From Tubulanus polymorphus (lineage: Eukaryota; Animalia; Nemertea), in assembly GCF_964204645.1 (NCBI RefSeq), contig NC_134033.1:2314131-2378130 (forward strand): a stretch of 64,000 bases of DNA, written 5' to 3'. The position numbers and the translations under genes were made by a program. Under the pieces are notes generated by a model. The model was not told the origin of the DNA, made no database searches, and saw nothing but the letters and a program-made list of their open reading frames with translations. Numbering within the stretch: the first letter of the stretch is position 1; every line of letters begins with the position of its first letter. Positions 2,342 to 27,134 of the stretch are shown here, one piece after another.

Positions 2342-2709
2342 TCATTTAATGTGAATATTTTTGATATGCCGTTTAACATCAGAGGACTGACCGAACTGCC
2401 GATCGCAATACGGACATCGATAATTTTTCTGTTTGAGATGCACGTTTTTGTGGTGACGCGACAGCGTGTACGCGTTCGTCAAGACGGCGTTACAGACGTT
2501 GCAGACGAATTTCTCGGCGGAGGAAGCGGTTGTCGAAGCGTTCGGATTCATGGGTACACCGATCAGCGGCGGTACGTAGTAGCGCGATGTCTGCTGGGAT
2601 GTATTTCGCGTCGGGTGACGATGGGCCGAATTCCCCCACGATGCATTGCCGGTCGTCTGCCAAATGTCGCCACCACCGGAACTGCCGCCATGATAGTAAC
2701 TTCGGTTTC
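2342..2709 (-). CDS. Variable terminal exon V10 of the zinc-finger locus (2 C2H2 fingers)
   Basis: Acceptor TATTTTCAG|GA (phase 1), open through CNVCNAVLTNAYTLSRHHKNVH and CPYCDRQFGQSSDVKRHIKNIH to TGA. Confidence 0.85.
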
Positions 2710-2879
2710 CTGAAAATATACATGTTAAATCTAAATGAATTATTCGAATATTTTCGATTAGATTGAGTGGAAGTCACTCGATTATGGCAGGTTTTGATTG
2801 GTCTCTGCCGATTACGAAATTCTCTTCTGGTGCGTTCGTTTCAACCAGAATACGCTCTAACTATTCCGGAATAGTAAAA

Positions 2880-3266
2880 TGTCTAAACCTGATTGGTGCG
2901 GCCGGTAGAGAGTTTGTAATCTGTAAACCTGATAGAAGCGGCCGGTAGAGAGTTTGTAATCTGTAAACCCGATAGAAGCGGCCGGTAGAGAGTTTGTAAT
3001 CTGTAAACCCGATAGAAGTGGTCGGTAGAGCGTTAGTAATCTGTACACCCGATAGAAGCGGCCGGTAGAGAGTTTGTAATCTGTAAACCTGATAGAAGCG
3101 GCCGGTAGAGAGTTTGTAATCTGTACACCCGATAGAAGCGGCCGGTAGAGAGTTTGTAATCTGTAAACCCGATAGAAGCGGCCGGTAGAGAGTTTGTAAT
3201 CTGTAAACCTGATAGAAGCGGCCGGTAGAGAGTTTGTAATCTGTAAACCCGATAGAAGCGGCCGGA
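2880..3266. repeat. 40-bp minisatellite, about 9 copies
   Basis: Unit GCCGGTAGAGAGTTTGTAATCTGTAAACCCGATAGAAGCG recurring at 2901, 2941, 2981 and onward. Confidence 0.95.
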
Positions 3267-4382
3267 ATCAGGAATGCGATTCAAAGTGGAATATATTCCA
3301 CCGAAACATCATTGGGTTGTTATTCTTGCGAAACGCAGTATCATCTCTACATATAGAAATCAGCCAACAGAATACCACTTCTAAATATTTGTCAAGATTT
3401 ATTTTTGATATTGATGACGATGATGAATTTTCAAACATTTACACGCAGTTATAATGAACATAATTTATTTATACATAATATATACATATATGTACTGTAT
3501 GCACTAATGTACTCATATTTACCCTGTATCGACATAGAGACCATAAAATGCGTCACAGACTTAACAGGAGATACGATACACTGAACACGGGGCGTGGGGG
3601 TCTTTACAGGGGGAGGGGGAGGGGGTTAAATGAACTCTTAAATGATCGATTCTAGAGCGCACGGTTATACACGTGGTTACGGGGGAGTTGGACGTATCTA
3701 TAGTTTTAAGTTAGAAATATGTTTCGAAGTAAGTAAATGTCCGTAAAAAACTAAAACTTTCATTTAACGAAAACGAAAAGTCAGCGACTCGTGACTTCTA
3801 TTGGCAGCCACAACTAAAATTCGTTATAAGAATTCACGCCACGACGTAGTACCACAGCGAGAAGAGAGCGCCTTCTGCCGCACATATATTTACAATTACA
3901 CGATGTACAAGGTATTAAAACGTCAGAAAATTGAAAAATCAAAGATAGAACTTCGTTCCTGAATCGCGAAACTTGTAAAGGTCGGGGTCGCTTGAAGGTC
4001 GTCGCTTAACCCATTTTGTCTCGGAAATTTTTTCACACGATTCGTAACTTATGAACACAATGATCGTCCGAAGTCAACAGTTAAATCATATTTTGAAAAA
4101 ACTCCACGGTACAGTTTCTGTTGAAAATAACGAGAAATTTACTAAAACAAATCGTGGCGAACAAAACGCTGCACGAAACAGGATTACCGTAACAAAATAA
4201 TCGAGCGAATTCGACGAAACAAAGGACAGGATTTTTCGCAACGAAAAAGAGCGAACACTTTCCAAAAACACATTGAAATTATTACTGAGTCCCTTCCGAA
4301 CGCGGATGGATTGTTTTCACACGTAAGTCACAAAATTGACGGCGATTCCTATATTTTCGAATATTTCATCAGTAACCGACGA

Positions 4383-4651
4383 TCAACCAGGTTGCTGCTG
4401 CTGCTGCTGCTGTTGTTGTTGCTGGTGCTGTCTTTGATGGACGTGCAGCAGATGCGATTGCAAGTGGAAATTGTGCCCGAATCTGCGGAAGCACAGCGGA
4501 CACTGGAAATCTCTGATGTTTAAATGCACGGTTTTCTGGTGTCGTTTCAACGTCTGCTTAGTCCGGTAGCCGCGGCCGCACGCCGGGCAGATGTAGTCCC
4601 CGTAGCTGGTTCGTTCGTCGGTCCGCTGGTAGTAGGTCGCCGTCGTAACCG
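4383..4651 (-). CDS. Variable terminal exon V9 (2 C2H2 fingers plus polyQ tail); absent from the ORF track
   Basis: Acceptor ATTTTGCAG|CG (phase 1); manual translation gives YICPACGRGYRTKQTLKRHQKTVHLNIRDFQCPLCFRRFGHNFHLQSHLLHVH, polyQ, PG*; no in-frame ATG. Confidence 0.85.
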
Positions 4652-4939
4652 CTGCAAAATACGAGCAAAAATACTCCGCTAATTCGTTTGAAACTCTAGA
4701 AATTGAAATAGAACGCGCTTAATTCAATCTTGAGGTTTTTTAGTATCCTTTGATATTCCCGAATGGAAGATGGCCGATGAACGTAATTTGGCTACATGTG
4801 CTTATTTCTACTACTACTTCTTGACCGAATTTTAGAAATGTAATTCAAAACGTAAAATAAAAGTTCATGAAAGTTACAATAGTCTTGAGGTTTGCGTGTA
4901 AAGGCGCGTCAAAACGCGCAAGCTAATATCAGTCAGTCG

Positions 4940-5016
4940 TCGAATTCGGGATTCGAACTACGGATCGCACGTGTACCAGCCGGGGCAGTGCTCTAACTAA
5001 TTGACCCATCAGGGCG
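4940..5016 (-). mobile_element. Degenerate tRNA-derived SINE head
   Basis: A-box-like TGGGTCAATTAGTTAGAGCA and B-box GTTCGAATCC on the minus strand, no intact cloverleaf. Confidence 0.45.
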
Positions 5017-5590
5017 AGTAATAAAGTGACACTTGAAAATGATAAAACCAAGTACCACGGCTGATAACTGAAAATATATGAGCTTAAATTGAAGAAATTA
5101 ATAGCGAATTTTTTTCTAAAGCAGTAAAATCTTTCTCGCGATAAACCGATGAATAACAAGAAAAGCGATGGCGCCAAACAAAACAGACAGGAGACTAGTC
5201 GAAACTTGTGCTTTTCATCAATTTATCTTGGAAAAAAATATTCACCACTGCTTTTCAGAGACAAGCGACTGTCGTCTGATTCGGGTGAAGAATGCAAAGC
5301 CACCATCGAAGAAAAAAGGGTCAGAGTAATCTAACGTTTCAACTCAAGCGAGCCATTTTCAAAAAAGCTGAAATAATGAATTTTCGAAAAATCGAAGTTG
5401 AAACGCTAAGCTCTATCGAGCCAAACGCAGACGGCGCTGAGAAACCCGGAAACAGAGACGACGGAAATATATTTCCGAGCGATTCCCTGCGCGCGTCGGG
5501 CTGAACACTTTTTCTTCGATTGTATATTGATATTATATTCTTCAGATAGATTCAGTACTCATCCAGATAATCGAAACGATATCTTACGTC

Positions 5591-5967
5591 TCATAGCGAG
5601 AACAGCGTGTCCGTCGAGTCGGTCGTTTTGTTTTTGTCTTTGCGCACTATTTTATGTATGGCGAACATGTGTTTCTCGGCGGCGGTTTTCTGCGCGAACA
5701 GTCTCCGGCAAATCGGGCAGGAGAACTCGCGTATTTTCAAGTGTACAGTGCGCTGGTGTCGTTGCAGGTTGGCCATGCTCGAGTACGACTCGCCGCACGT
5801 GTTGCACGGGTGCTGTTTGGCGGACGAACGCGACAGACGCCGGCGCCGAGGAGTTTTGGGCCGGTGGTGGCCGGTTGTGTTGGTGGTGGCGGCGGGCGCC
5901 GGCGGCGGCGAGGGGAAGTCCGGAAACGGCGGCGGAAAACGCATCAGCGGAAAGTGAGGTCGCCAGC
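5591..5967 (-). CDS. Variable terminal exon V8 (2 C2H2 fingers)
   Basis: Acceptor TCGTTGCAG|GC (phase 1), GWRPHFPLMRFPPPF...CNTCGESYSSMANLQRHQRTVH...CPICRRLFAQKTAAEKHMFAIH. Confidence 0.85.
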
Positions 5968-6160
5968 CTGCAACGACACAAAAACAAGAAGACCACGATT
6001 TAAAATTTCAGTTCAGCTAGCTTGATACGAGGTTAAGAAATAATTTTGGAGACGAAAAAATTGTCTTTTTCGTATTAAGGACAGAGAATATGTATGATAT
6101 ATATTATGAGTGAATAAACGAAACGGATAGTACTTTATTGGTTAACTTGTTTTTGAAGAA

Positions 6161-6490
6161 CCATCCTCCCCCGGCAGGGATTCGAACCTGATCGCATCGA
6201 GACTCGCCACGGTACGAAACCCTGCCATTCTAGACGGGTGCGTAGGTACATGCGCAGCTTAGGTGATGTCATTATTAGCCAATCAGAAATCCTGTTTTAT
6301 TTTAGCCCGGGTTTTTCCATTTAAAGTTCTTCTTTGAAATTTACCTCAGCAATTATACAACGAGCGATCTGATTGCTGGGGCAAGTTTTCGCTCTGCAAA
6401 CCTGCGCACCCGGTCTGGTGTGGCAGGCGTTCGTGCCGTGGCTGAGTGTAGCGATGCCATCAGGTTCGAGTCCCAGCCGAGGAAGGATGG
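6161..6490. mobile_element. Palindromic element with two inverted tRNA-like arms
   Basis: Reverse complement of 6161-6240 aligns with 6407-6490; both arms carry B-box GGTTCGA(A/G)TCCC facing outward. Confidence 0.6.
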
Positions 6491-7614
6491 AGCTTTCGCT
6501 ATTAGCTTGTACAATAGCTTCATCTGATGAACGAAGCTACCATACATTAATATATAAAGTCTGCACCAGGTCAACGCGGCTCATCTACGAATCTTCTCAT
6601 CGTGAAAAGTTTCAGAAAAATTACATAAGACACTGTTTTGAAAATACACCTCCCGGAAAGGAAAAAGACCGTATGCCCGGTTGAAGAAATATATAATGCG
6701 TCGTGATAGGCTGTCCGGAGCGAGGGGTTTCAGAGTTTAACACCGATATATGATTCGCGTAAACGTAATCAATTTGATAGAAAAGAAAAAGTCGATCGCC
6801 AATGCAAAACTACGTACATAACCGACACCAGACTATATTTCATCGAACATTCATCAGACAGGGTTTCGTGGAGTAGCGATCGACTGCTTCGGGTGAAGAT
6901 TAAAACCGACAGTAGAAAAAAAACAAACCGTAAGACGATGTCGAATGTTACTATTAAGAGAAATCCAACGACGGAATGACATTTCACCACGCGGTTTACG
7001 AATCGTTTCAACACAGCCAGCAACGCCGCTAACCAAACAAAAACTGACTGAATCGAATAATTTGAATATAAAACGTATTTATTTTCATCATTATCTTTAC
7101 TTTGCACATCTCCCTCTTAATTGAGAAGATTAAAATACAGTTTAAACTTGTGACTACTCGCCTGGAAATCGGTGGAAAGTCAGGGGATTTTATTTCTTTT
7201 CTAAAGTCGAATTTTGTAAAGAAGCTAGAAACCACGGAAAATGTAGGAAAATTTGTTGAGATTGCAGAGTTACCATTCATGTCTTACATATTTGACCGCA
7301 TATATTGATTGGATTCTTAGTAGTCCAAGTCAGGGAAAACGACGTGAATAACTCAGTAACAACCCGTCGCTGTACGAAACGAAGATAATCTATTGTTTTT
7401 TGTTGTTGTTGTCGTTGTAGATCTCGAGAGGAAGATTTCGTTTCGAACGAGTCGCGAGGAATTAATTCGTAAAGGAGTATTAAAAGAGAATTACGACGCC
7501 GATCAAATCGAGCAACAGGAATCACCGTCATTGATTCGTCAGCGTGAATTAGGTATGTTGTGATTCATACAGTTAACTTCGCTTAACTCGGACTTTAAAT
7601 TAGACTAGAACTTA

Positions 7615-7833
7615 GGCTAAACAAAAATGATACCTTGTTTCTCCGCAGCGGCCGGGTCATTTTTGTAAAATATGATAAAATTTATAAACAGTTCATTTCT
7701 ATAGCGGCCGGGTCTGTTATGGTGAAATTGATCACGATTTTAAAAAAAGTAATGCATAGGGTAGATAGGCGGCCGGCCGGGTCAACATTTAAGCTCAGCA
7801 GAGCGGAGAAACAAGGTATCAATTTTTTTGGCC
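7615..7833. mobile_element. Tourist/PIF-Harbinger-like MITE, inverted copy of 1564-1782
   Basis: Same TIRs, TTA flanks, internal sequence reverse-complementary to the first copy. Confidence 0.75.
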
Positions 7834-8335
7834 TTATATAACAGCGTAAACCTACCGTTTACAACTAAATTCATCGATTATTTCAAAATGATAATTTTCA
7901 ACTAAAAAGATTCATCATAGCTATGAAAAGAAAAACTCGCTTTTTTAATCACGATGCAACAATTACCTTATCATAATCAAAACTGCTTTCTCTGAATGAA
8001 TGATTGAAAAAATTATTTGTAAATTTGCGAAACTTGATGAAAAATGTTTGCGGACGTTCCGTTCGTTGAGTAGAGTTTAATGTCTGCAGGTTATGAAAAA
8101 GAGTCTGCGATTACGTTAAAAAAATTACTGATTTTCATCCTTAAAATGCAATGTCAATAAACAATAAAATGTAGCCGAATCGATCTCCTTTTCGCGACAG
8201 CATCCACTGAAAGCTGATGACTGAATGATGAACTTTTGGTGCACCAAGGTCGCTAGGTCTTTGCTAAATCGACCTTGACATTACAGTTAAGTTGCAGAAA
8301 GAAACGTTCCCGGAAGATCTGGCGAGGAAAATTCA

Positions 8336-8446
8336 GGATCCAGTTCTACAGTCATGAGTTAGAGTTAACTCTGAGTTGAAATTAGTTCATTTTCAATGAG
8401 TTAACTCTGGGTCGAATCTGAAACTCACAACTGTGGAACTGGGTCC
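8336..8446. mobile_element. Short palindromic MITE family (related copies near 46713, 52710, 55825, 56345)
   Basis: GGATCCAGTTC..CAG..TGAGTT ... AACTCACAACTGTGGAACTGGGTCC inverted ends. Confidence 0.6.
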
Positions 8447-8559
8447 AGATGTTTAACCACGAAAATTCTGGCAACCACAAAGACATCCATTCGATACAGC
8501 AGAATAGACATGTTTAATATTCACAGGTGCGTGCTATAAGACCAACTCTTAAACTTGTA

Positions 8560-8890
8560 CAATTTACATATTCACATGACTGCACATGTTTCTGGATACA
8601 TGTATCACTAACACATGGTAATTCCCCCATTCACATGTGCACCACATGTAAATGTATCCCACCTTTACATGCACATGTATCACACCAAAATTTGTTTATA
8701 TATCCCACTCACATGCTTAACTGTATTGCACCCACATGTACAATTATTCCACCTTAAAGCTGATGTATCCCACCCACCACATGTATCCCACCCACCATAT
8801 GTAGCCCACCCACCACATGTATCCCACCCGCCACATGTATCCCACCCACCACACGTATCCCACCCACCACATGTATCCCACCCGCATGTT
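8560..8890. repeat. 18-bp tandem repeat (CCACATGTATCCCACCCA) with a degenerate left extension
   Basis: About 7 clean copies at 8760-8890; CACATG-rich decayed copies to the left. Confidence 0.85.
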
Positions 8891-9000
8891 ATACTGTATT
8901 ACATTAAGTACAAGCACATACTATTGATTATATTTGCTCATTTACTGAGATATATCCCCCGTTTGATTGTTATGATTGTGGACTATAGGGGGCGTTGTAT

Positions 9001-9494
9001 TCAGTTATTAGTGGGTAACCGCGCGTGTACTGACACGTCCTCTGTAACGTTATGCACGCGCACCAGGTGGCGCTGTAGCTGTATCGGCTGGCCGTAACGC
9101 TCGCTACAGAACAGACACTTATAGCGACGGATTCCGAGGTGGATGATTTTCATGTGTCGTTTCAGATTGTAAACGTATTTGAACGATTTGCCGCAAATCG
9201 AGCACGTCGCTCCGACTGTCGCCGGCGACACGGTCGGAGCGATCGGCTGCGCCGGAGCCACGGAGCCGTCCATTCGATTCATTAGCGCGTCGACGTCGTC
9301 GATATCCTCGTACGGGTTCGAGATTTGATCCCGCGCGTGGAGCAGGTCATCGTCGTCGTCATCGTCGGCGGTATCGACGATGCGAGATCGCCCTCCTCGT
9401 CTGCGGCGGCCGCGTTCGGACCACGGCGAGGACGAGAATCGACACGAATCACCGACCGTCGCGCGATTCCGCGCCGACACGACCGCGACCATTC
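9001..9494 (-). CDS. Variable terminal exon V7 (2 C2H2 fingers)
   Basis: Acceptor TATTTTGCAG|GA (phase 1); CSICGKSFKYVYNLKRHMKIIH and CLFCSERYGQPIQLQRHLVRVH. Confidence 0.85.
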
Positions 9495-10347
9495 CTGCAA
9501 AATATAGAGCCACAAACGAAACATCAGTAACGTCTTCCAAATTAGATTTTCACACGAGTATCAGGGGCATCGCTTAAAATATCGAAAAATCTCAAAATAT
9601 CTTCATCGCAAAATCTCATTTTCAGCAGCAATCTTTCGTAAGACAATCTAGATTTACTCGTCAACTGTGACATTCGATGACATTCGAAATTCCATTCCTT
9701 TATTTGTATCTTAAAACACAATTTTCTGGTACACAGAATGATGAATAATCAGCTTCAATACATGTACAGTTAGTACACTCGGTACTCTGCGCTCAAGTTT
9801 GTGTATTTTACCGAAACAAAAATTTGTAAACCTTTAAATTCCCTCATTCTCGACTCGGTGAAACGTCTGAAGCAGTCTTGAAAACAAAGTTATTTTGAAT
9901 TGTTCTTGAATGTGAGAAAATGTCGTAAGGTCACGTGACAGCGGCGGGACGACAGAACGATGCGCGCGTGTAAAAGGCCTTTTCAATATGGCGTCGGTGT
10001 TAGTAATCTGGTTTAGTGAGGTCCGAGGACGATCTCATCACAACAAGGCTAGAAGACTCACAATCGTACCGTTACGAAATGAATCATCGGATTTCTAATT
10101 TTCGACAATTCCGCTTCGCGGGGACCTATCCACAAATGACAGCCATTACGAACGTCGTCTTCACAGAAATTTTCTTTGACGATTCTCAACTCTCAGTAAC
10201 CGTTGAACTCGAGGCAGTATTTACATCCCAAATGTTACCGACTTATGACAGTCTACTGAAATAAATATACCGGGGTGGTCGCTGCCGAGGATTCGAGCAA
10301 AAAAAGCAATTTACTGTTCGTACGAAAAGCATCCGTCTTAATGTCAT

Positions 10348-10748
10348 CTAATACGTCGTGTTCGTGATTCTATGAACTTTGATTAGGTGGCGCGTCAGTT
10401 GCATGGAATAGCCGAACGACTCCGGGCAGAATCGACACGAATGCCGTTTGATTCCCATGTGTACGTAACTCGTGTGTCGGTTCAAACTGTACAGATGTTT
10501 GAAACGTTTTTCGCAGACGTTGCAAACGAATTCCGTCGTCTGCCGAAAAGTTCCGTCGTCTGTCGCAGCGCCGCTGCCGCCGCGCTCGGCGACACCCGCT
10601 AGATCGCCGTGGTAATATGAAGCGTCGCTGTTGTCTCGGTCGTCAACCAGGTGACGCTGATGGTCTCCATGCGCGCGTTGATTGGTTGCTGTCGCTGACG
10701 ACGATTGATAATTAACGTAATGATAGTCTCCGTAGCCTCCGGCCAGTC
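10348..10748 (-). CDS. Variable terminal exon V6 (2 C2H2 fingers); absent from the ORF track
   Basis: Acceptor ATTTTTGTAG|GA (phase 1); manual translation GLAGGYGDYHY...FVCNVCEKRFKHLYSLNRHTSYVHMGIKRHSCRFCPESFGYSMQLTRHLIKVHRITNTTY*. Confidence 0.85.
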
Positions 10749-10791
10749 CTACAAAAATGCAATTTGAAATCGGTCAAACGACTGTGTTCAA

Positions 10792-11079
10792 CCCTTTCAG
10801 TGTGTCTACATCACAGTGCGGTGTATAAATCCGTGATGGACTATGCTAGTACATCGCATCGCGATGTATTGATGAATTCAGTTTTTATCTCCAATGAAAG
10901 ATGGCAGCACCTGTCAAACATTGTTAAATATTTGTAAACTAACAATTCAGGGCAGAGCAGTGTAGCACCGCGGTGCAGACGCATTATAGCGCTATGCCTG
11001 TTATTCAACGCAATTTTTTAGAGACTTAACATTATCTCCAGCACTTAAATAGGACATTAATGAGTCGGCACTGAAAGGG
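10792..11079. mobile_element. piggyBac-like non-autonomous MITE
   Basis: TIRs CCCTTTCAGTG / CACTGAAAGGG; same family as 27268-27526 and 57054-57333. Confidence 0.7.
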
Positions 11080-12061
11080 TTTTAAATGGTTGGAATTAAT
11101 TAGGTTTGCTAGTCGCGTCTACTATTTCAAATAGTAGACCATTCACCCGGTAAGCGTTAGCTATGAAATTCGATCTCTGCGGTTGTCAGATTTTAGCACC
11201 ATCGTCGCGCTGGGTACAGGTTGGAACACGTAGGACTGATTTCGATAAAACGAAATGACAAAATGTCAAAACGTTTTGTAAATGAAATGAACGCGCGATA
11301 CAAATTCAGCAGACGGATTTTAAGATATGTTTACAGCTGTTTGGCGCTTAAAATACTCTAGGCTGAGCTCGACAGTGAAGACTTGCGGTACCAGAGACTT
11401 TGATCATTTTGGTCTCTGAACAAAAACCCGTCTAAAAACTAATTTGAAAACTAATCTTACATGTTAAAAAAAAGACTTAAACCTCACTTGAGACTTAAAT
11501 ATGACCGAAAACATCGGACATCTTGGACGATAAAACAAACAATAACAACAGATTTGTAATAATTAAAGTCTGGTCTGAACGATTGGAACCGGGCTGAAGC
11601 TAACTTAGGATAAATCGAGGACGACCATGTCAACTCGGGAAAAGTTGTCGATTTCAATTAATGAACCGCATGCTGTAGAGGTGTTAGTCATTACTGTCTC
11701 TCAGGACTGTTTATAACACAGTAGACTCCGCCTGCCTTGGATCTTGTGGGGTGGATAGATTCTTTCCGAGGAGCGTGTATTTCGGGACAGACGGAGCAGG
11801 GATGGGCTGTCATCACGGCGAGTTGTGGAGTGAGAAAATGTCCAACATATTGTCAGTCAGAGCGCGAGAAAATGTCTAACACATTGTCAGTCAGAGCGCG
11901 AGAAAACCGATGCAATCGCCTCCGGGGTCAATGGAGTCCAGAGCACTTGATCTGATTCTAGAGGCAATCGTTTCTGGAGTCAATGGAGCATGTGATAATC
12001 CGAGGAAATCGACTTCGTGGTGAACGCAGTCAACTGTATGCCAGGACTCCAGAAACGATTT

Positions 12062-12393
12062 TCAATAACCATCATGGCGGCGCAGCCGAGACTGCGCCAT
12101 CACGTTGTTTCGTATCTGATGAACTTTCTCCAGGTGGCGCATGAGTTGCGTTTGGTATCCGTATTTCTCGTCGCAGAACGCGCACTCGTAACGCCGCGCG
12201 TTCAAATGCACGATTTGAACGTGATTTCGAACGTTCGTCGAATTCTTGAAGTTCTTCGCGCAATACGAACACGAGAACGACGACGTCTGCGGTTGATTGC
12301 CGCATGTCTGCTCGATTGCCTCGTAGCGCCCCCACGTGGCGGAATTTTCCCCGGACGGCGGGTATCCGTAATAGAAGGTATCAGCGTCCATGC
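12062..12393 (-). CDS. Variable terminal exon V5 (2 C2H2 fingers)
   Basis: Acceptor TATTTTGCAG|GC (phase 1); CSYCAKNFKNSTNVRNHVQIVH and CAFCDEKYGYQTQLMRHLEKVH. Confidence 0.85.
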
Positions 12394-12483
12394 CTGCAAA
12401 ATATCCAGAACACTTTGATTACCACCGGGAATGAAAGCTCAATCGGGAATGAAAGGTCAATCGGGCGACATCAGTGTCGAGGT

Positions 12484-12700
12484 CACGACCTCAATGTTAA
12501 GGTCACGCATGAAGGAGCCGAATCACGAGCGATTTCGTGAACCCCCACTAGGTGGAGCTGTAGCTTCTGTCCGTTCGAAGCGTCGGCCGCAAACTCCGAA
12601 CATTTGAAACCAAAATTCATCCTTTTCGGTGACAGACCAAGTACAGCAACGCATCAGACAAAGCCTTCCCCTTGCATTCCGTGGAGTAAATAGCTTCCAT
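12484..12700 (-). pseudogene. Possible decayed zinc-finger variable exon
   Basis: Minus strand reads FKCSE...GQKLQLHLVGVHE, with CGRRF in a shifted frame between. Confidence 0.4.
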
Positions 12701-13672: not shown

Positions 13673-13674
13673 CA

Positions 13675-13768
<94 letters not shown>

Positions 13769-13923
13769 CTTAATTCGGATCACGGACTTACAAAATTCAT
13801 CCATTTTTTTTGTGGAAAATCTGGAATTAGTCATTTTCTTGTATATTAGCGAACGAATGGACTGCAAATATTGTCCGGATTAAGACCAAAATGCAAATCG
13901 AGCCGATCCGGATTAAGAGGGTT

Positions 13924-13989
<66 letters not shown>
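13673..13989. repeat. Two (TA)n microsatellites flanking a short element with inverted ends
   Basis: (TA)n at 13673-13765 and 13928-13989; inner CTTAATTCGGATC / GATCCGGATTAAG. Confidence 0.85.
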
Positions 13990-13991
<2 letters not shown>

Positions 13992-15418: not shown

Positions 15419-16836
15419 TTAGTGGTCGATATTTTCATCGATCATCGCGCGTTCGTTCCGTTTATGTTTCTCCGACGCGTAGTGAGACTCGAGATCCTGC
15501 AGCGTACCGATCGACTCGTCGCACACCGCACACTCGAACGGTCCCTGCTGCTCGTGCGCGACGGCCATGTGTCGCATCAGATCGCGACCAGTCGTGAAAC
15601 CCTCGCCGCACGTGCCGCATTCGTAGATCATCTGAACGGCGCTCGCGTCGACCGGCGGGATCGGTAGCGTATCCGCGGCGCCGCCGAGAATGACGTGTCC
15701 GTGCGCGTCCGATTTGTGCGCGTCGAGAAGAGTCTGCCGCGTGAAATGAACGTTGCATTTGTCGCAGGAGAAAACGCGATTCAGATTTGCAAGTAATCCG
15801 TCTGCCGGAACAACAGCGTCTGCTCGTACTAATCCGTCTGCCGAGACAACAGTGTCTGCTCGTACTAATCTGTCTGCTTGTACTAATCCGTCTGCCGAGA
15901 CAACAGCCTCTGTTCGTACTAATCCGTCTGCCGAAACAACAGAGTCTGCTCGTACTAATCCGTCTGCCGAGACAACAGCGTCTGCTCGTACTAATCCGTC
16001 TGCTGAGACAACAGCGTCTGCTCGTACTAATCCACCTGCTTGTCGCGTGGGAACCTCATCCTCGCCAATACGGTTTACCGAGCTCAGTCTATGGCAGTGT
16101 TTATCGTGCTGTCGGTATTTCTCGAGCGTTTCGAACTGTTGCGCGCACGCGCGACACGAGAACGGCAACGGATCGAGCGCCGACTTCGAATGAACAAACT
16201 GAACGTGGCGTTGCAACGACACGCGATCGGTGAACGGCTTCGCGCAGATATCGCACGGCCAGATTTTCACCTTCAATCGCCCGCTGTACCGCTCGGCGTG
16301 CACGACCACCAGGTGGCGCTTCAGGTCGTATTCGCGTTGGAATTTACGCGCGCACTCCGGGCAGGCGAAGCGACGCGCGCGTTCGTGTATCCCGGCGACG
16401 TGTCGGTACGCATTCGGGCAGTGTTTGAATTCCGCGCGACAAAGGCGGCAGACGTACGAACGAACGCCGGTTACCGGGTCGACGATCGTTTCGATTTGAT
16501 CCTTCGTCGTTTGCGTGTAGGCCGTCGATTTTTTACGATCGCCGCACGACGACGACGGAATCAACGTCGCCAGATCGGTCGTCGAAGCTTTCCGATATTT
16601 TCCGTCGCATGCGTACATGACCGTTTTCTCGCGCGTCAATTTCGACGACGACGGATTCCGCGACACGTGAACGTCGTGCGCGGCGGTCAGGTGATCCTTC
16701 AAGGCGCCGCGCGATACGAAATAATCGCGACACAGCGGACACCGTACACTGATCCGCGTCGTCGATCCGTTCGCCGAACCCTCGTCACCGGAACCGTCCG
16801 TTTCGTTTCCATGTCGTTTCGAAGGCTCAACGGAAC
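15419..16836 (-). CDS. Variable terminal exon V4 (8 C2H2 fingers, internal 12-aa repeat)
   Basis: Acceptor TCATTTCAG|GT (phase 1); first finger CPLCRDYFVSRGALKDHLTAAH begins upstream of the track's ORF start; stop at 15419. Confidence 0.88.
15790..16040 (-). repeat. In-frame 36-bp coding minisatellite (GLVRADAVVSAD, about 7 units)
   Basis: Unit CTCGTACTAATCCGTCTGCCGAGACAACAGCGTCTG on + strand. Confidence 0.9.
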
Positions 16837-17192
16837 CTGAAATGACAGGAAACTAGAAAATAAATATCACGGTTCGCACCAACGCAATGTGTATAGCTTT
16901 ATAGCCTCAAAATGGCTGCCAGGCAGTGACAAGGGTTTTAACCGTGTGACGAGGGTTTTCTAAATAATCTAAAAATTTCAATAAAAGCCAACTTAAGTTT
17001 TTTAATTACATATTCTAACTTTCTTTAAAATTATTAGACCAATGCACCATTTATAACTACTATTCCTCGATGAGGGGAAAATTTCAAGTTCGCCGGGAAA
17101 AATTTTTTCAATTTTGACTGAAAAGGAATGACTGAACTGATCGCGATCGAAAAATCCCGAGCTCGTTAAAAACAGTCACCGCACCTGATGAC

Positions 17193-18529
17193 TTACTCCT
17201 GATCGCCTGGCGACGGTTCCACTGGCTGCTCACAGATGGAGCCGTCGTCTTGCTGCATGACGTAAATAATCTGCGGTTGTTGCTGATTCGGGTCGGTCTG
17301 CTCAGAGATTGCGGTTGCGTCGGCAACGTTGCCGCCGTTATTAACCTCGTCCAGCTGCACGGCCGACGCAATAATCGACAGCAACTGCTGCTTGGCGTCG
17401 TCGTCGATATCCATATCCTCGGTCGCCGCGGCCGAGATCGTCTCGATACCGTCGCCGCCGTCCTCCGACTTCACGTAACCGACGGAAACCGGTTCGAAGT
17501 GGTGCATCTTCAACAGCTCGTCCTGCGTCAGCGGCTCGTCGCTCGTCTTCGACGTCACCGTCTGGTGCCGCGCGCTCAACAGGTGGCGCTTCAGGTCGTG
17601 TTTCTGCGCGAACGTCTTGCCGCACACGTAGCACATGAAATGGCGTTTGCCCTCGTGTACGTTGCGTTTGTGGCGCGTCAGGTTCGTTTCGGCGTTGAAC
17701 ACCTTTTCGCACTGGTCGCACGCGAACTTCTCCGAGTCCTCGACGTGCTGTCGCAGGATGTGCGACTTCAGGTCGTCCTCGCGCGAGTACTCCTTACCGC
17801 AATGGCCGCACACGAAGTCGCGTATATCCGTGTGTATCGACTTGTTGTGGCGTTCGAGGTTGCGTTTCGAGTAGAACGTCTGCAGACAGATGCCGCACGC
17901 GTAAACCTTGGCCGTGCCGTCCGCGTTGTGCGTGTTCTTCAAATGCCGGTTGAGGTCTTCGTTGCGTTTGAACGACTTGTTGCAGTCGGCGCGCGGGCAC
18001 GGGTAGTTGCGCTCCTGCTGGTGAACGGTGGACATGTGGCGCTGGACGTTGCGCGGCGAGTGGAACAACTTGCCGCAAACGTCGCACGGGTGATCGGCGA
18101 CGCGCGTCGCGCCGTCGACCGGGTGGCAGTTTTTGCGATGCGCCGTCAGGTAGTCGGAACGCAGGAACGTTTTCGCACAGATGTCGCACATCAACGAGTA
18201 CGTCTTCTCGTGGAAGCCCTCGACGTGACGAATCAACGAACGCTTCAACTTGAACGTGCGGTCGCAGCCCTCGTACGTGCACGACCAGAACTCGTCGGGC
18301 ACCGGCGCGACGCCGTGCGCCGTCTCGCGGTGTTTAACGTACGCGGCGCGATCGGTGAACCGCTCGTCGCAGTCGGCGCAACGCAAGTCGACGTTGTGGT
18401 CGATTTTGATGTGCGTTTCGAGCGATTGCTCGAGCGTGAATTTTTTCGGACACTCGGGACAGTAGTGCGTCGACAACGCGGCGAGCACGCGCTGCTTTAC
18501 TTGTTTGTCTTTCTCTTCGCGGCTCAGCT
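17193..18529 (-). CDS. Variable terminal exon V3 (10 C2H2 fingers)
   Basis: Acceptor TCTTTACAG|AG (phase 1); ten CxxC..HxxxxH-type units from CPECPKKF to CYVCGKTFAQKHDLKRH. Confidence 0.9.
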
Positions 18530-19707
18530 CTGTAAAGACACAGTAGAACCTCATGTTAGTAAATTATGATATCAATAATCAGATCATTTTTATCAATCGG
18601 GAACTGATTAGGTTTGACCCGACTACTTTGTAGCTTTCCCCGGAAAAGAGAGTAAATTTACATCAAAAATCGTAGTCTTATAGCAAATGAACTAGAAATC
18701 ATTCTGATTTTGAGAGTATTTTGGAAGTCTTGGGAGTGAATGACTTTTCAGCCTTCATACTCAATGTGCAATCATTAATTTTTCCTTTATTCAATTTTTT
18801 CATGTCAATCACAATTAATCAATCAATCAATCAATTTCAGGGTTAAGTTCAGAATCGGGGCATTAATTTGGGCGACACACATTTCAACCTTTTAGATATC
18901 GCGGTCAACCAAAAATATGTGTCGGCATAAAACATGAGGTTCTACCATATCTCGTAAACCATTCGTAGTAATCAACTTCACGCCGATAGGAAAAAAAAAA
19001 ATATATATATATCTCATTAACGGATAATTCTGAATTTCTAAACGCAGACCGATACTTTGTAAACGTTGATACTCGTAAAAACACACAATCTAAAAAAAAA
19101 CTCGAAATCATTCTGACGAACAAGAAATCAAAATTATGAATATGAAACTAGAAATCTTGACTAAAATCTGTACACATCAAATTCATAACTGTCAAACTGC
19201 AAATATGTATATTGAAAAAAAGGGGGAAAAAAAAAACTCGAAATCTTGTCAAACCTTGACAAAAACTAAATAAATTCTGCAAATCTAGATTATATACGCG
19301 TCAAAACTCGAACTCTACGTCATCAACGGTCTTTCGAAACATTAAGTAGACATGTTCATTACTCTACAGTCAGTTGTATCTCATCATTCTCTATTCATTA
19401 GCGCCAGGAAAACTGCGTCCGCGTCTGCGGCGCGCCGGGGACCGTTGCGCAAACAACTTAAGCCTGTTTTTACTGACGAGTTTATTTTGATAACGGCGCT
19501 GAAAATGAATTCCTCGATATCCGGGAAATCCGGACCCAATAATTGGCAAAAAAAAATAATCTGGAATTCTGAAGAAATCCGGCGATGTGGTAACTGTGTG
19601 AAAATCTAGCTCGCGAAATTTTCTTCTCGGAAGCCTTGTTGTCTTTAGCCTTACTCACTTTCAAAGTTATTTTCGTCGCCGCTTTTACAAAAATGAATCC
19701 ACGAGTT

Positions 19708-21032
19708 CTACTTCGTGTCGACAATTTGCCGTACGATCTGCTGTATATTCTCCGCCGCCTGCTCCTCGTCCATTTCCTCCTCCTCCACCGCCACCTCGTC
19801 GTCGTCCTCGATCTCCTGCTTCGGCGTGCGAACGTAAATGACCTTCGGCTTGTGTTTCTTGCGGTAGTGCGTCTGCAGCTGGTCGGTGCGGTTGAAATTC
19901 TCGCCGCACGCGTCGCAGATCAGCTGCCGCGCGCCCTCGTGTATCGTCGCCAGGTGGCGCTCTAAACCGCGCGTCGACGAGAACTCCTTGTCGCAGATGT
20001 AGCAGACGGGCCGGTCGGAGGTGTCGTCGTACTCCAACGCCTCGTCGGCGTAATCGACCGGCGCTCCCGGTTCGAGGTGCTCGTTCAGGAAATGCCGGTT
20101 CAACGCGATCGGGTCGCCGTACGCCTGCTGGCATTCCGCGCAGTTGTGCTCGGCGTCGTTAGCGCTCTTGTGTTCGGCGTACAGATGCTTCAACGCGTCG
20201 TCGATCTTCGAGAACGCGAGACCGCAGATTTTACAGATGACCGTGCAGTCGTCGGTGAACACGGACGTCGCGTACGCGAAATCGTCGCCGAACAATTTCT
20301 TCAAGTGTTCCTCCGAGCGCAGATGCGCAAGGAGTATGTCGCGCGTGAGGAACCCGACGCGACACAACGTGCAGCCGAGCACCTTCTGGTGCGTCGCCTC
20401 GTGCGCGTCGAGCTCGGCCTGCGTGCCGAACCGGTGCCGGCAACTCGCGAAGTTACACGCGAACTTGAAATCCTCGGAGAAGCTGCGCTTGGCGCCGGGG
20501 AACACGCCGACCGACTCGTCGTTGTCGTGTTGCGCGGCGAGATGCCGCATCAGCTGCGGCTTACGACGGAACGCGATGCCGCAGCTGCGACAGCCGTACG
20601 GCCGCACCTGCAGGTGTTTCTCCATCACGTGGCGGTCCTTGTTCGTCGCGTTGTCGTAGATCTTGCCGCAGAACTCGCACGTGCACCGCGTCACCGAGCG
20701 GTACTCGCCGACCGGCGCGCGTTTACGCCTGACGATCTTCTCGCCGGCGAGCGTGTCCTCCTCGTGCGCGGCGAGCAGGTGCTCGACGAGGTATTCCTTG
20801 CGTTTGAACGACATCGCGCAGTGCTCGCAGTCGTACGCCGGCGTCGCCGCCGGTTCGTGTACCTCGCGCACGTGGCGTTTACAATTGAACAGCGTCGTGA
20901 ACGTTTTCTCGCAGTACGTGCACTTCGTGGTCGTGTTGCGTCGCGACGGCACGGTCGGAGTCCGAGGCGGAGTCCGCGTCGCCGAGTCACCCGATGACGA
21001 ACGTAGTTTCATTAGGATTTTTTGCGTAAGAC
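19708..21032 (-). CDS. Variable terminal exon V2 (10 C2H2 fingers)
   Basis: Acceptor TCTTTCCAG|GT (phase 1), GLTQKILMKLRSS...; ten fingers and an acidic tail. Confidence 0.88.
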
Positions 21033-21469
21033 CTGGAAAGACAGGGAAGAGCGTTTGTTTTTAGTTTTTTTTTCTTTTTGCACCGATTTTGTGTTTCTCT
21101 TAAAATCCCGAAATATAAATCGGGCGTGTAATTTTTTCGCGGGGGACGTGGACCGAATCGAAACCCGAGACGGCGGGAAATATTTCGGGGGATTTTTCTC
21201 ATTTCAATATCTAAATTTTCGAACAAAGTTTACTCTTCACCTGTCGTTTCCAGGAACGAAAAAAAAAGAAGACGAAGTCAGCTGAAATTTTGAAAGTCAC
21301 GAACGCCGGGTCGACTCGCTGAATACGGGTCATCACGGATTTACGCAGTTGTGATAAATCTTACCCACGAGAAATTTCTCATCATAACCGGAAAAAAGAT
21401 GATGTTTGATGCGCTCCGACTTGGAAAATGATTTATATCTTGGCATCCCGGAAAATGGTCTTAGATCTT

Positions 21470-21885
21470 AAGACTGGTCGTAAGCTGTTTGATTGGCTAT
21501 AGAACCAAGATGAACTTAAGACTAGTCGTAAGCTGTTTGATTGGCTATAGAACCAAGATGAACTTAGACTGGTCGTAAGCTGTTTGATTGGCTATAGAAC
21601 CAAGATGAACTTAAGACTGGTCGTAAGCTGTTTGATTGGCTATAGAACCAAGATGAACTTAAGACTGGTCGTAAGCTGTTTGATTGGCTATAGAACCAAG
21701 ATGAACTTAGACTGGTCGTAAGCTGTTTGATTGGCTATAGAACCAAGATGAACTTAAGACTGGTCGTAAGCTGTTTGATTGGCTATAGAACCAAGATGAA
21801 CTTAAGACTGGTCGTAAGCTTTTTGATTGGCTATAGAACCAAGATGAACTTAAGTCTGGTCTTAAGTTGTTAGATTGGCTATGAT
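21470..21885. repeat. 48-bp minisatellite, about 8 copies, related to the dispersed repeat at 25950-26150
   Basis: Unit AAGACTGGTCGTAAGCTGTTTGATTGGCTATAGAACCAAGATGAACTT. Confidence 0.93.
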
Positions 21886-23074
21886 TGCCAAGGTTTTACA
21901 GTCTTAACAACTCAAGACTAGTCTCAACTCATTTTGGTTCTATAGCTACCGCTTTGGAACCAAAATGAGTTAAGACTGGTCTTAAGTTGTTTAGGCTGTA
22001 AAACCTCAATCATTTTAAAATAGTCTCAAATCCAGCGCCGGGAGGCTCAGTTGCAGTCAGGACTTCCAAAGCCTAAGTACGGTCTTTCATTTAACTGCTA
22101 CACGTAGAGATTGGCTAAAGAACCACGTTAGACACGGTTTTAAATCTTAGCCAGTCGCTGCGCTAACTGAATCCAGGAATCGCAACAAATATCAATCATC
22201 GGGAATCACGACTTTTCTCGTTAAGACAGAGTTAACCATAGATTCAAATAGATATTGCGCACACGCGGGTAAACATTTTTATATTTTTAAGTACACTTTT
22301 TTATTTTCCTGTAAATGATTCTTTTTTTTTTGTTACATTCGAGAATAAATCGAACTCGGTCGGTCGATCCGGAACTACTATATATAAGACATGCAAAAAA
22401 TGCAAAAATTGCTCTCTCGCTCTGTTCTGTCCAGCCCGCCCGCCCTCCCTCCTCGTAAAATAAATAAATAGTGACAACATGTATACAAAAGATATTCAGG
22501 ACTAGCGTTCATAAAAATGATATGATTAAAATGGAGCTCGTTGCTGCTACGGGGGCCAAGTGCTCAAATTGTTCGTGGCTTTCATCGACATTTCACGATT
22601 AAAATTGAATCAAATTGTTTTTGACATCGAGTAAATGATCAGTCAGCAATTTTAACACCGACCAAATATTAAGAGTAAAGTTTTTTCACTCTATTTGGAT
22701 TCGCATTTCAAAGTTGATCACCGAGGTTCATATGAAAATTGGGGCTACATTTGCTCAAAAAATGGTTCGAGTCCGAACGTCGACGTAGCGACAATTCGAA
22801 GTTCATCGTTATTACGACATTCATTCGTCGTTTATCTCGAGTCGATGAGCCCCCGATTCCGATGGAAAAAATCACGACGCCATCTGGTGACGGACCGCCC
22901 GAATCGTAACAAGCCCCATTTTCAACGCAGGGAATAAAAACATTGAATTCAATTCGAACACGAGATGAAGACGAAAATCGTTTTGAGAACGAGACAAAAA
23001 ATGCGGCTAAAATTTTCCGAAAAGTTTTTCTTTTTTTATCCGAGAAAATCTTCGCGATAACCTCTGCGGGGATC

Positions 23075-23616
23075 CTACGACTGGGCCAACATCAGATCGA
23101 TGTGCGGATCGAAATCCGGTGGCGGGAGATTCTCATTCGAGAAAACCATCGCGGCTGCGGCATTAGACGTAGGTGGTGGCGCCACCGAGCGAGTAATGGC
23201 AGACGTACCGTCCGTCTGCTGGTGCGCGATCAGAGCGGACGGCGACGCGACGACCGCCGGCGCCGACGTCGTTACGCCGAGCGCGCTGCCCGAACAATGT
23301 CTCGACTGGTGGCGTTTCAGATTGAACGACTGGCCGAAGCTCTTTCCGCAGCCGTTACAATGGAACTTACGCACGCCGACGTGCACGGTCATGTGATGTC
23401 GGCGCATCGTGTGTAAATGCATGAACGACTGTCCGCAGTGATTGCAGTAGTAAAGCGACGCCGGGTCGACGCCACGTTTCGCAGCGATGCCGCGTTTCGT
23501 CGCCGATTTACGCGGCGTCGTCGTCTGGCCGCGGACGCCGCCGTCTGCTGCTGCCGTCAATAGCCGACCGTCGCCGCCGCCCTGGTGGTGGTAGTAACGT
23601 GCCATCGGATCGGCCC
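23075..23616 (-). CDS. Variable terminal exon V1, most proximal (2 fingers)
   Basis: Acceptor TACTTGCAG|GG (phase 1); CNHCGQSFMHLHTMRRHHMTVH and CNGCGKSFGQSFNLKRHQSRHC. Confidence 0.85.
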
Positions 23617-24814
23617 CTGCAAGTAGAGGCAAGAGACGAACGATCAGATCAGTTGACACAAACACGGGCAGCAGACGAGCGTGGTCAGCCAGCAGACGGA
23701 CTGGTTAACGGGCAGACGGGCTGGTCAGCTGGCAGACGACAGGACCATTCAATTCCAAGAGCAGACGGACTTGGCTTAAAAAAGCCGGTGGACCGCTCGG
23801 CAGACGCATTACCCGAAGAAATAGTCCAAGCTTAGAAATCTCAGACCGGGAACAGCTACTGAACCCGCCAGCACATTAGGCCTATAAATTAGTCAAAAGG
23901 GAAGACTGACCGGCCAACGACCAGTCGACTTACAACGAAGTCCCAAGAAATTCCTTCTTAAATTGAGACAAGATTTCGAATTCATCTTAAACCGCCGCGC
24001 GGCGAAATCGAATTCCATTTCGGATTCGAAATTCCGATGACCGAAAGAAACTTCAAAATATTCGGGAAAAAAAAAAACGGAAATATTTCCCGGCGCCCAC
24101 TCGAAAATCATTACGAAAACCGACGACGACGAAAACGTTATTTCCGAACCTGGAAACTTTTAAAATGACAGGATTTTTCTCCGTTTTGAGTTCGAAACTT
24201 TTTATCCATTTTACACAGGTTGACATATACACAAAATACAAAATCGAAAGCAGTATTTTTTACTTTGAGTGTCATCTAGAAAATGATCCTAGGGTCCCTG
24301 ATATGCCAAATGAAACTACAACCCTCAACCTGAGAATGAGTTCTGAACAAATTTCGTATCCAAAGAATCAAAGTTGAAGAGAATTGGCCGCATTTTTTAG
24401 TAGTTTGAACTTTCGAGTTCGGCAAAAATACTGCTTCGGAATAGAATATGCTCAGAAATTTCACATTGCGGTTTGAATGAAGACTTTAGGAGCGGAGGAC
24501 AGTTTTATGATAAATTCGATTCTCTTCATGACTTTCCGATGACCTTCCAGCATTTGAACACGATTCTTCCGAAACTGAACTCTCAGGTAGGAAGTCGGAC
24601 AGAGGAGTAGACGGGTGGGGAGAGGAGGCTCATTAAGAGAGGAGAGGGAAAAAAATGAGAGGGAAACAGAGAGTTCAAATGAAACTTTCGTTTTCGAATT
24701 CAAATTTTGTCTAATTTTTCGAGAACAAACTGGTCGTAAAATTTCCGAGCATTTTTTAAAAGAAGACTTTACGAGAAGATTTTTTATTTTGGTAAAAAGT
24801 TATCGAGTACGCAC

Positions 24815-25357
24815 CTGCTAGATTGTGACTGGTTCCGGGCTGCGGTTCCTGACTGTCGCTCCACGACGACTGCGTGTCCAAACCGGTCTGCTCCAACGCG
24901 GCGAAACTGTTATCAGCGGTCGTCACGGCCGACGCGTACGTCGACACGTCCGCCGTCTGCATAGCAACGCGTCGACGCTGCGGCGTCTGCTGATACGCGG
25001 TCGGCGTCATCGCGTTGCTGCCCGACGTTTTGCGTTTGCGGCCGCCGCGCGACACGGCGGCTGCCGCCGATTTTTGTCCGCGCGTCATCAGTTTTTGTTG
25101 CTCGGCGCCCGACGGTTCGTTTTTGATATTTTGCACGATGCGGTTGACGATGTTGTCCTTTTTATTGTTCGTCGTCGACGACGATTCGCCTACGCTGAAT
25201 TCGCCTTCCTGCCACGCGATGTCGCCCTCCTCGGCGGCACCCGGGTATTCCGGTTTAGTCGTGTATTCGTGGTCCTGGCTCTGATTTTCGAGGTCCATCA
25301 CCTCGTTGATGGCGGTTTGCGCCGTCGCCTGAAATTCTTCGTTGTCATATTCCTCGC
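24815..25357 (-). CDS. Last constant exon of the zinc-finger locus (acidic / low-complexity linker)
   Basis: Acceptor TTTTTCCAG|GC, donor GCAG|GTGCGT (phase 1), 543 nt; contains IKNE (SUMO consensus) and RKRK (NLS-like). Confidence 0.8.
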
Positions 25358-26224
25358 CTGGAAAAATAATTTTCGACCGAATCGAAAATTTAACAAAATC
25401 TTCAAACCACTTATTCATGAGGCTTTTAATCAATTTTATTGATTATTCTATATTTTACGTTATGTTATACAATTGTAAATACTTCTTGATGTCCCTCTGT
25501 ATACCTCTCATCGAGGTGATGAGTGTAAATAAATTTCAATTTCAATTTCAATTCATTAACAAAGGTCTGGGCTTCAAATCGTTCATTCTCGGAGTTTTAA
25601 AGGAGAAAATTTCAAGAAAGTGTAGGCATCACTTTCATATTCTCAATTACTGTAGACTACTCCTAAATCGGTACTGTTTATCTCAGTTAACCGTTAATTC
25701 GGTGATTTTTGTAAGCAAATTTCTATTCTATTCATTACCTTAACCCGGTTTCTAATTCGGTAAGAAAAAAAAAATCCGCTCGCGATTGTATCAATTTACG
25801 GGTAGCTTCTAAACAGCTAAAAACTGGACAAGAATTCCTACTTATTTCTCTCAAAATTGGAGGAGTTTCGGGCATTTTGCTCAAATCAAAAGAGTTTCAA
25901 GCACCTATTAAATTTTTGATTTATTAGAAGGAAACCAGGGGACAGTCGTGACTTAAGTACAAAAGTGGTCTTGGTTAGATTAGCTATAGAACTAAGTTGG
26001 TCTTAGACTGGTCTTAAGTCTAAGCCATGACTATGCAACTGGCCCTGAAGTCCGAAAGTGGTCTTCATTCTTAAGACTGGTCTTAAGTTGTGAGATTGGC
26101 TATCGAACTAAGTTTGTCATATAGAACTAAGCCATGACTATGCAACCTGCCACTGAAGTTATAGCGGCCCGAGTCACGACCCCACAACTGGGGCGCGGCA
26201 CTGCGTCACTCGACAAATACTGAC

Positions 26225-26365
26225 CGTCGCTGGTGCAAGATCGACGCGATTTCGAACGTTCTTCCTGCCATTCGTGCCACGTTTCGTCGTCCGCCGATAA
26301 AACGATACTATCCAATAATCCTTTATGATTCCAGATGCACTCGATCAGCGTTCCTTCCGGAATAT
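26225..26365 (-). CDS. Constant exon of the zinc-finger locus (alternative acceptor possible at 26430)
   Basis: DIPEGTLIECIWNHKGLLDSIVLSADDETWHEWQEERSKSRRSCTSD; phase-1 donor G|GTCAGT joins 25357 in frame. Confidence 0.65.
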
Positions 26366-26505
26366 CTACAATTACATACAACACAATACACATATATACC
26401 CTATTCAAAGATTTAGACTTCTTCGTCATCCTACAATATAGTGCAAAATGGATTAAAAAACCTATGTCTTAGATCTGTATAATATACCTTTACTGGTCCT
26501 ATTAA

Positions 26506-26905
26506 CCCTTTCAGTGCGTCTACACCGCAGTGCGTTGTATAAATCAGTGATTGACTTTGCTAGTACACCCCATTGCACATTTCAAATACATTTACATAAA
26601 ACAAACAGGGGAAATTCCGGTAGAGGTTTAACCCTTTCAGTGCTTCTTCACCGCAATGCATAAATCAAAGATAGATTTTGCTAGTACGCCGCACTTAGGT
26701 GCATTGATGTAATTAGTTATCTCTTTCGAAAAATGGCAGCACCTGTCAAACATAGTGAAATACTAGTCACTAACGATACGCCGCACCGTGGTGTAGATGC
26801 ACTATAGAGGTATTCCCGTTATTCAACACACTAGGGTGGAATTTTTTTAAATTTTCAAAATTATCTCCAGCACTATAGGGTATTGATTAGTCAACACTGA
26901 AAGTG
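26506..26905. mobile_element. Partial or nested copies of the piggyBac-like MITE
   Basis: TTAACCCTTTCAGTGC starts near 26502 and 26628. Confidence 0.6.
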
Positions 26906-27050
26906 TGAAGACCTATATCATAAGGTAAATAATACCAAACCTGACTGGGCTAGGCCAACTGATATATGCTCTCGAGCTACGTTGAAATTCAGCGCAAGTT
27001 GTGCAATTGAGAAATGTTACCCTGCAACCTTCGAAGCATTTCGAACTTAC

Positions 27051-27134
27051 CTAACGTTAAATTCGATAATACGACCATTTTTTATTCGATGTTTTATACG
27101 TTCGCAGCTCGCGTGAAAAACTAAACCAAATCCT
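27051..27134 (-). CDS. Probable start-codon exon of the zinc-finger locus (ATG at 27078, MVVLSNLTL)
   Basis: Long polyT-CAG acceptor and TAG|GTAAGT donor; AAAAATGG context with upstream in-frame stops; phase 1 joins 26365 in frame. Confidence 0.55.

Follow-up and report, generated by a model that had tools for sequence, protein, structure and literature searches.

The locus and its zinc-finger array

In this study, we examined a window of 64,000 nucleotides (nt) from the nemertean Tubulanus polymorphus (C9:2314131-2378130, in a genome of 268 Mb and 77 contigs), in which an earlier note, made from the sequence alone, had described an array of C2H2 zinc-finger blocks as one gene with ten swappable ends. 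Our analysis makes it likely that the region from about 27134 down to about 1000 holds a single minus-strand protein-coding gene, in which a splice donor at 24815 would pair with any one of as many as ten alternative last exons (Table 1).

A regular-expression scan of stop-to-stop frames bore out the ten blocks, all C2H2-bearing open frames on the minus strand (2345-23704), and yielded no credible C2H2 frame on the plus strand. The finger pattern C-x2-4-C-x12-H-x3-5-H was found in all ten, and the Pfam zf-C2H2 family (PF00096) matched V1-V4 with 39-143 bits against a cut-off of 25.2. As the earlier note had it, every block ends in a stop codon of its own, be it TAG, TAA or TGA. The window and the 10 kb beyond its start, long gaps included, contained no further finger block, intact or decayed.

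The seven two-finger modules can be aligned without gaps at 25-49% identity, and the recognition residues (helix positions -1, 2, 3 and 6) are distinct in every finger. Together these features point to ancient duplications of an exon whose copies have stayed intact. Since the recognition residues differ from finger to finger, the finger sets are likely to differ in their DNA preferences. GC-rich islands with a high CpG ratio overlap the ten blocks as well as the constant exons. Two tandem repeats lie within the array: V4 carries between fingers 5 and 6 (15794-16040) an in-frame repeat of 36 nt in approximately 5-7 copies, a repetitive linker within the finger array with a 12-residue unit of type ADGLVRADAVVS, and a 40-nt repeat (9.6 copies, 94% identity) is situated between V9 and V10 at 2884-3265.

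Table 1 Exons of the proposed zinc-finger gene and receptor genes beside it (window positions; (-) minus strand, (+) plus strand)
Feature	Position	Strand	Description
E1 (putative)	27051..27134	(-)	ATG 27078, nine codons MVVLSNLTL and one base, donor G/gtaagt, phase 1
E2	26225..26365	(-)	N-motif core (LD, DDxTWxxW, R), phase 1 at both ends; joint seen in RNA
E3	24815..25357	(-)	Constant linker, 180 codons, no fingers, starts and ends in phase 1
V1	23075..23616	(-)	179 codons, 2 fingers, stop TAG; 3′ untranslated region to ~22290, AATAAA 22305
V2	19708..21032	(-)	440 codons, 10 fingers, stop TAG; AATAAA 19486
V3	17193..18529	(-)	444 codons, 10 fingers, stop TAA; AATAAA 17006
V4	15419..16836	(-)	471 codons, 8 fingers, stop TAA; finger 1 not preceded by Met
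V5	12062..12393	(-)	109 codons, 2 fingers, stop TGA; variant poly(A) hexamers only
V6	10348..10748	(-)	132 codons, 2 fingers, stop TAG; AATAAA 9704
V7	9001..9494	(-)	163 codons, 2 fingers, stop TGA
V8	5591..5967	(-)	124 codons, 2 fingers, stop TGA; variant poly(A) hexamers only
V9	4383..4651	(-)	88 codons, 2 fingers, stop TGA; no Met
V10	2342..2709	(-)	121 codons, 2 fingers, stop TGA; final block of the array
GPCR array	29693-30634, 32274-33227, 36562-37512, 38830-39780, 41044-41994	(-)	Pfam 7tm_1 matches the first
Divergent GPCR	34750-35739	(+)	

Splice sites and transcript ends

Each variable block opens at a pyrimidine-rich YAG acceptor in phase 1, which here means that the first exon base is at codon position 2; this reading held at every one of the ten coordinates at which it had been proposed. 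The base following the acceptor is G in nine blocks and C in V9. Upstream, the donor of E3 (GCAG/gtgcgt), the only one available, is also in phase 1 and thereby matches all ten acceptors, and we confirmed the exon itself to be free of fingers, as had been suggested.

The acceptors had, nonetheless, been picked by eye, for which reason the earlier note itself regarded its chance estimate for ten equal phases as overstating significance. We scored every AG from the upstream in-frame stop to finger 1 by one fixed rule, which counts pyrimidines from -20 to -4, Y at -3 and G at +1 and penalizes an upstream AG. The eye-picked acceptor scored highest in nine of the ten blocks and every untied winner was in phase 1, while in V9 the site at 4651 (phase 1) tied with one at 4695 (phase 2). 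On the minus strand, acceptors that score this well are met with roughly 1 to 4 times in each kb. Nine or more phase-1 top sites would have a probability of about 4e-4 under independence, an assumption which does not hold because the blocks are diverged duplicates and would have inherited their phase. The choice of acceptors was thus upheld by the fixed score.

A scan for chaining of the blocks through internal donors gave no plausible donor in V5-V10, which argues that these are terminal exons, and only GT sites of moderate strength in V1-V4; the blocks thus act as terminal exons, and we rejected chaining. AATAAA signals are present at 22305, 19486, 14379, 9704 and 3403, in keeping with the candidates listed previously.

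The constant 5′ exons

The protein probably starts at ATG 27078 in the putative exon E1. An in-frame TAA at 27084 lies directly upstream of this ATG, the putative 5′ boundary at 27134 is preceded by a T-run and cag, and the exon ends ...GTTAG/gtaagt at 27051. RNA contigs bearing E2 carry three letters (TAG) beyond the E2 acceptor, the same as those at the end of E1, and past these letters they continue for about 200 nt outside the examined stretch. In paralogs of E2 elsewhere in the genome, the start codon is found 7-9 residues upstream of and contiguous with the N-terminal motif (MFVLSIS-DFP..., MLLLEGVEV-HVxE...), an arrangement resembling MVVLSNLTL joined to DIPEG... at the present locus. 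The predicted E1-E2 junction is well supported by the TAG match and the paralog starts taken together. Because of the same two correspondences, the protein would begin with the N-terminal motif and not with a BTB domain.

E3 has an acidic start and then turns basic, with RKRK, and is rich in S, T and Q. The RKRK stretch is likely a nuclear localisation signal, and the composition of the exon suggests that it probably serves as a disordered activation and nuclear-localisation linker. E3 is single-copy in the genome and matches no Pfam family. A full HMMER search of 1.84 billion representative proteins returned no real homolog, the two matches obtained being bacterial repeat proteins matched by chance, and a word-indexed search with the constant exon found none either within its length window of 99-315 aa, which would miss full isoforms. 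The listed exonic polymorphisms are mostly synonymous (4 of 4 in E3, 2 of 3 in V1, 6 of 7 overall), which lends support to the reading frames.

By arithmetic, the constant part amounts to 712 nt, or 237 residues and one base. In the structure we propose, E1 (start codon and nine residues), E2 (motif core) and E3 (linker) would make up this shared 237-residue front. The phase-1 donor at 24815 would then join one of the terminal exons, each of which brings its own acceptor, fingers and stop and in most cases a poly(A) signal as well. The first two bases of the chosen V exon would complete the split codon. The resulting products would range from 326 to 709 residues, with a common N-terminal part and a variable DNA-binding end.

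RNA evidence for splicing

Four public runs of the species, available to us as contigs, cover the stretch 20880-26879 and hence V1 and V2 among the variable blocks. Contig depths are poor measures, and we did not rank isoforms by them. One of the runs, X2, shows even depth and contigs that pass through splice sites unspliced, and because of this we treat it as behaving like DNA.

Splicing of E2 to E3 is seen as a joint at 25356/26224 (GT..AG, minus strand) in contigs of X1 (2014) and X3 (2024), and this joint is missing from the DNA-like X2. For the variable exons, a contig of 284 nt in X1 runs from 24813-24983 straight into 20918-21030 with no extra letters. This corresponds to an in-frame joint of donor 24815 with acceptor 21032, in which the letters GT can be assigned to either exon; E3 is thus spliced to V2, which is not the nearest zinc-finger exon, with V1 skipped.

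For V1, a unitig of X3 (23144-23620) ends four letters past the acceptor, and these letters, gcag, are the last four of E3. A unitig ending after letters shared in this way marks the point where spliced and unspliced forms would begin to differ. An intron unitig overlapping V1 in the same run has far lower depth, and coverage ends near 22300-22480, by the AATAAA at 22305. We read these data as use of V1 at its predicted acceptor, its E3 partner not being displayed in the contig. As a whole, the proposal that donor 24815 serves ten acceptors was borne out for 21032, joined in X1, and indirectly for 23616, as a boundary in X3, these two being the acceptors that appear in the stretch covered.

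The introns of this stretch contain very high-copy repeats at 21467-21882, 25880-26100 and 26480-26880, including a 48-nt tandem repeat (8.7 copies). Other intron elements reach an X2 depth 100 to 4000 times the single-copy level and give rise to many spurious joints that link 21880 to 26000-26075. In the intron preceding V1 (23591-24236), the sequenced individuals differ strongly from the reference, with a 20-nt deletion at 23711, and many single-nucleotide polymorphisms fall at 24330-24767; this region would be useful for allele-specific tests of cis versus trans splicing.

The N-terminal motif and its family

The N-terminal motif (N-motif) spans 48 residues, with its core in E2 and invariant D, T, W, W and R in the pattern ...LD..[VI]...DD.TW..W...R. 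A profile built from 14 paralogs of E2 in the genome, of weak similarity (alignment A1), gave 49 matches genome-wide, one of them within the window. At ten sampled paralog loci, C2H2 frames follow the N-motif exon by 1-8 kb on the same strand in nine, no C2H2 frames were found on the opposite strand near it, and five of the loci carry 2-4 separate C2H2 blocks. We conclude that the N-motif is an unnamed module tied to zinc-finger genes in the Tubulanus lineage. Of the 49 matches, 15 are near-identical N-motif exons on both strands within 225 kb at C8:11413650-11638767, a cluster that represents a recent tandem amplification of the zinc-finger family.

AlphaFold2, run with a shallow alignment, modelled the N-motif as three helices with a mean pLDDT (predicted local distance difference test) of 82. 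Its identity could not be tied to a described domain. E2, E3 and the N-exons of five paralogs drew no Pfam match in hmmscan with E values as high as 10 allowed, by which we rejected KRAB, SCAN and ZAD. Structural comparison by Foldseek against the PDB and VIA-wide gave no meaningful match (best Foldseek E 6.7, VIA Z 3.7), and the ESM Atlas gave sub-threshold bacterial leads only. A loose pattern likeness to MADF/trihelix was likewise discarded, there being no PF10545 match in addition to these weak structural scores. With V3 as the homology query we recovered generic C2H2 proteins only, at no more than 34% identity and none with the N-motif. Prediction of an N-motif homodimer scored 0.02, controls not having been run, and so provides no evidence for or against binding; a role in partner binding or oligomerisation is our guess.

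Alternative explanations

Several observations weigh against the single-gene reading and have to be set beside it. RNA supports two of the ten variable exons, indirectly in the case of V1, where a haplotype difference could equally cause the unitig branch, and the E3-V2 junction is carried by a single contig of depth 3.7. Equal phase can be inherited by duplication and is by itself not proof of use. A Met precedes finger 1 in V1, V2, V5, V7, V8 and V10, and in V3 upstream of the acceptor, such that all seven could also be expressed from internal promoters. Finally, V5 and V8 have neither a canonical AATAAA nor ATTAAA.

One might hold that only V1 and V2 belong to the gene and that V3-V10 are zinc-finger genes in their own right, served by unrecognised 5′ exons or promoters, or else disused relics of duplication. 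The contigs end at 20880 and so provide no RNA support for V3-V10, phase 1 is in any case common in the N-motif family (top acceptor of 11 of 17 paralog C2H2 exons), and V3 could in principle stand alone because an ATG at 18554, in frame, precedes its acceptor by 25 nt. The claim that several blocks cannot be standalone genes therefore needs correcting for V3, although it withstood examination for V9, V6 and V4, which offer no usable start: in V4 and V6 the first Met lies beyond finger 1, and V9 is Met-free and yet has its frame and both fingers intact. Separate genes are also hard to reconcile with a window that holds the N-motif and an E3-like exon once each, so that the blocks lack 5′ exons of that family of their own, and with strong acceptors placed exactly at the starts of the open frames. 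Relics would not be expected to have kept every frame intact at 25-49% identity. We consider this explanation unlikely. Use of V3-V10 within the single gene would instead follow from their matching phase, the missing starts in V4, V6 and V9, the absence of another N-terminal exon from the window and the lack of internal donors in V5-V10.

It could also be that some or all of the variable exons reach the constant part by trans-splicing of separately transcribed RNAs, as for Drosophila mod(mdg4) and partly lola. There is precedent in these closest known systems (PMC13490949, PMC4667647), and V10 lies 22 kb from the donor, with nine poly(A) regions in between. However, the ten exons all follow the donor on its own strand, for which cis splicing suffices. 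Upstream of the acceptors the only shared intron motif was the acceptor consensus, and when the 300 nt preceding each acceptor were compared with the donor-side intron for RNA pairing of the docking/selector kind, complementarity did not exceed that of shuffled controls. We therefore favour a cis choice, which would operate by competition of 3′ splice sites coupled to cleavage and polyadenylation at the upstream poly(A) sites, and regard trans-splicing as quite improbable. That the junction contigs are artefacts, either de Bruijn chimeras through the GCAG/GT letters or a processed retrocopy elsewhere, we hold to be close to negligible. The E3-V2 contig is indeed one record of low depth, but the joints coincide exactly with GT..AG sites that had been predicted in advance, and they keep the reading frame. 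The E2-E3 joint comes from two independent studies, and the joints are missing from the DNA-like run. A retrocopy is excluded because E3 occurs once in the genome.

Taken together, we regard the locus as a genuine transcription-factor gene with alternative last exons, two of its ten variable exons being well anchored and the others probable. From the idea of one gene with ten swappable ends, the E2-E3 and E3-V2 junctions and the V1 boundary have been observed, while V3-V10 are assigned by inference. A function in the nucleus and in DNA binding, specificities that differ among the products and a mechanism in cis would likewise be expected from the features described.

Comparison with known systems

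To our knowledge, the BTB genes of arthropods are essentially the only ones known to exchange the DNA-binding domain of a transcription factor through an array of alternative last exons. The arthropod arrays are the basis of neuronal wiring, sex determination and insulator function. In Drosophila lola, a set of about 20 alternative 3′ terminal exons shares the strand of the constant 5′ exons, which are spliced to one of them. Most of the terminal exons encode a zinc-finger pair of differing specificity, and each has its own stop and poly(A) site, whereas fru, broad and ttk have only 2-5 variants. The present gene resembles lola in having one constant donor and alternative terminal DNA-binding exons, seven of the ten blocks being two-finger modules. 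It shares with mod(mdg4), fruitless, broad and tramtrack a layout in which a single N-terminus, for effector function or oligomerisation, is paired with a choice of C-terminal exons for DNA binding.

There are nevertheless clear differences. The N-terminus of lola is a TTK-type BTB, an arthropod-specific type (PMC11426971), and mod(mdg4), fruitless, broad and tramtrack are arthropod BTB proteins too, unlike the gene described here, which has a 48-residue helical motif, a nemertean host and three exons with 8-10 fingers. In mod(mdg4), moreover, the variable exons encode FLYWCH fingers, lie on both strands and require obligatory trans-splicing (PMC13490949). A six-frame search of the whole genome for BTB (PF00651) gave 57 matches, none in the window and the nearest on C9 310 kb away, which, with constant exons that match no Pfam family, agrees with the earlier description of an array without BTB. 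The guess that the DNA was probably not from an arthropod was correct in view of its palaeonemertean host, and the arthropod cuticle R&R domain is absent from the genome. Thus, the locus works like the lola group without being a member of it, as the BTB domain and the arthropod host both fail.

Other comparisons are more distant. KRAB, SCAN and ZAD are, like the N-motif, short N-terminal modules found on many C2H2 genes of one lineage and subject to local tandem amplification, but their genes usually have one finger array each and not an array of alternative terminal exons, and they have no sequence or structure match to the N-motif. Clustered protocadherins and UGT1A also join tandem variable exons to a shared constant part; in those loci, however, each variable exon is a first exon driven by a promoter of its own and the constant part follows on the 3′ side, an order reversed in the present gene, where choice would be made by splicing and polyadenylation.

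Implications

The published descriptions of such loci that we found concern arthropods only, with none on Tubulanus or on nemertean zinc-finger genes, consistent with the suggestion that the system is undescribed. The gene looks like an independent reinvention of the lola design outside arthropods. A BTB-less case in a ribbon worm would make this design convergent and not the quirk of one domain family, and would provide a second system in which to study what guides one donor to any of ten acceptors across 22 kb and nine poly(A) regions. It also draws attention to a new N-terminal module that accompanies zinc fingers and has 49 genomic copies. Annotation pipelines may split or merge such loci, and counts of spiralian transcription factors may consequently be off.

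More tentatively, and with rather more doubt than belief, we raise the idea that in Tubulanus, and perhaps in nemerteans, the N-motif zinc-finger family has evolved alternative-terminal-exon arrays repeatedly, which would constitute a second, independent, genome-wide lola-like system. If true, many transcription-factor specificities would be obtained from few promoters, the N-motif would take the partner-binding or oligomerising role of BTB, and long-range or trans-splicing would be possible.

Neighbouring genes

Directly upstream of the zinc-finger gene lies a minus-strand tandem array of five intronless rhodopsin-type G-protein-coupled receptor (GPCR) genes (29693-41994), each of about 315 aa and very alike, together with a divergent receptor gene (Table 1). 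The array looks like a lineage-specific expansion of chemoreceptor-like genes. On the other side, just before the start of the window (C9:2304131-2314130), three tandem minus-strand frames carry a GDSAGG motif of the esterase/lipase type.

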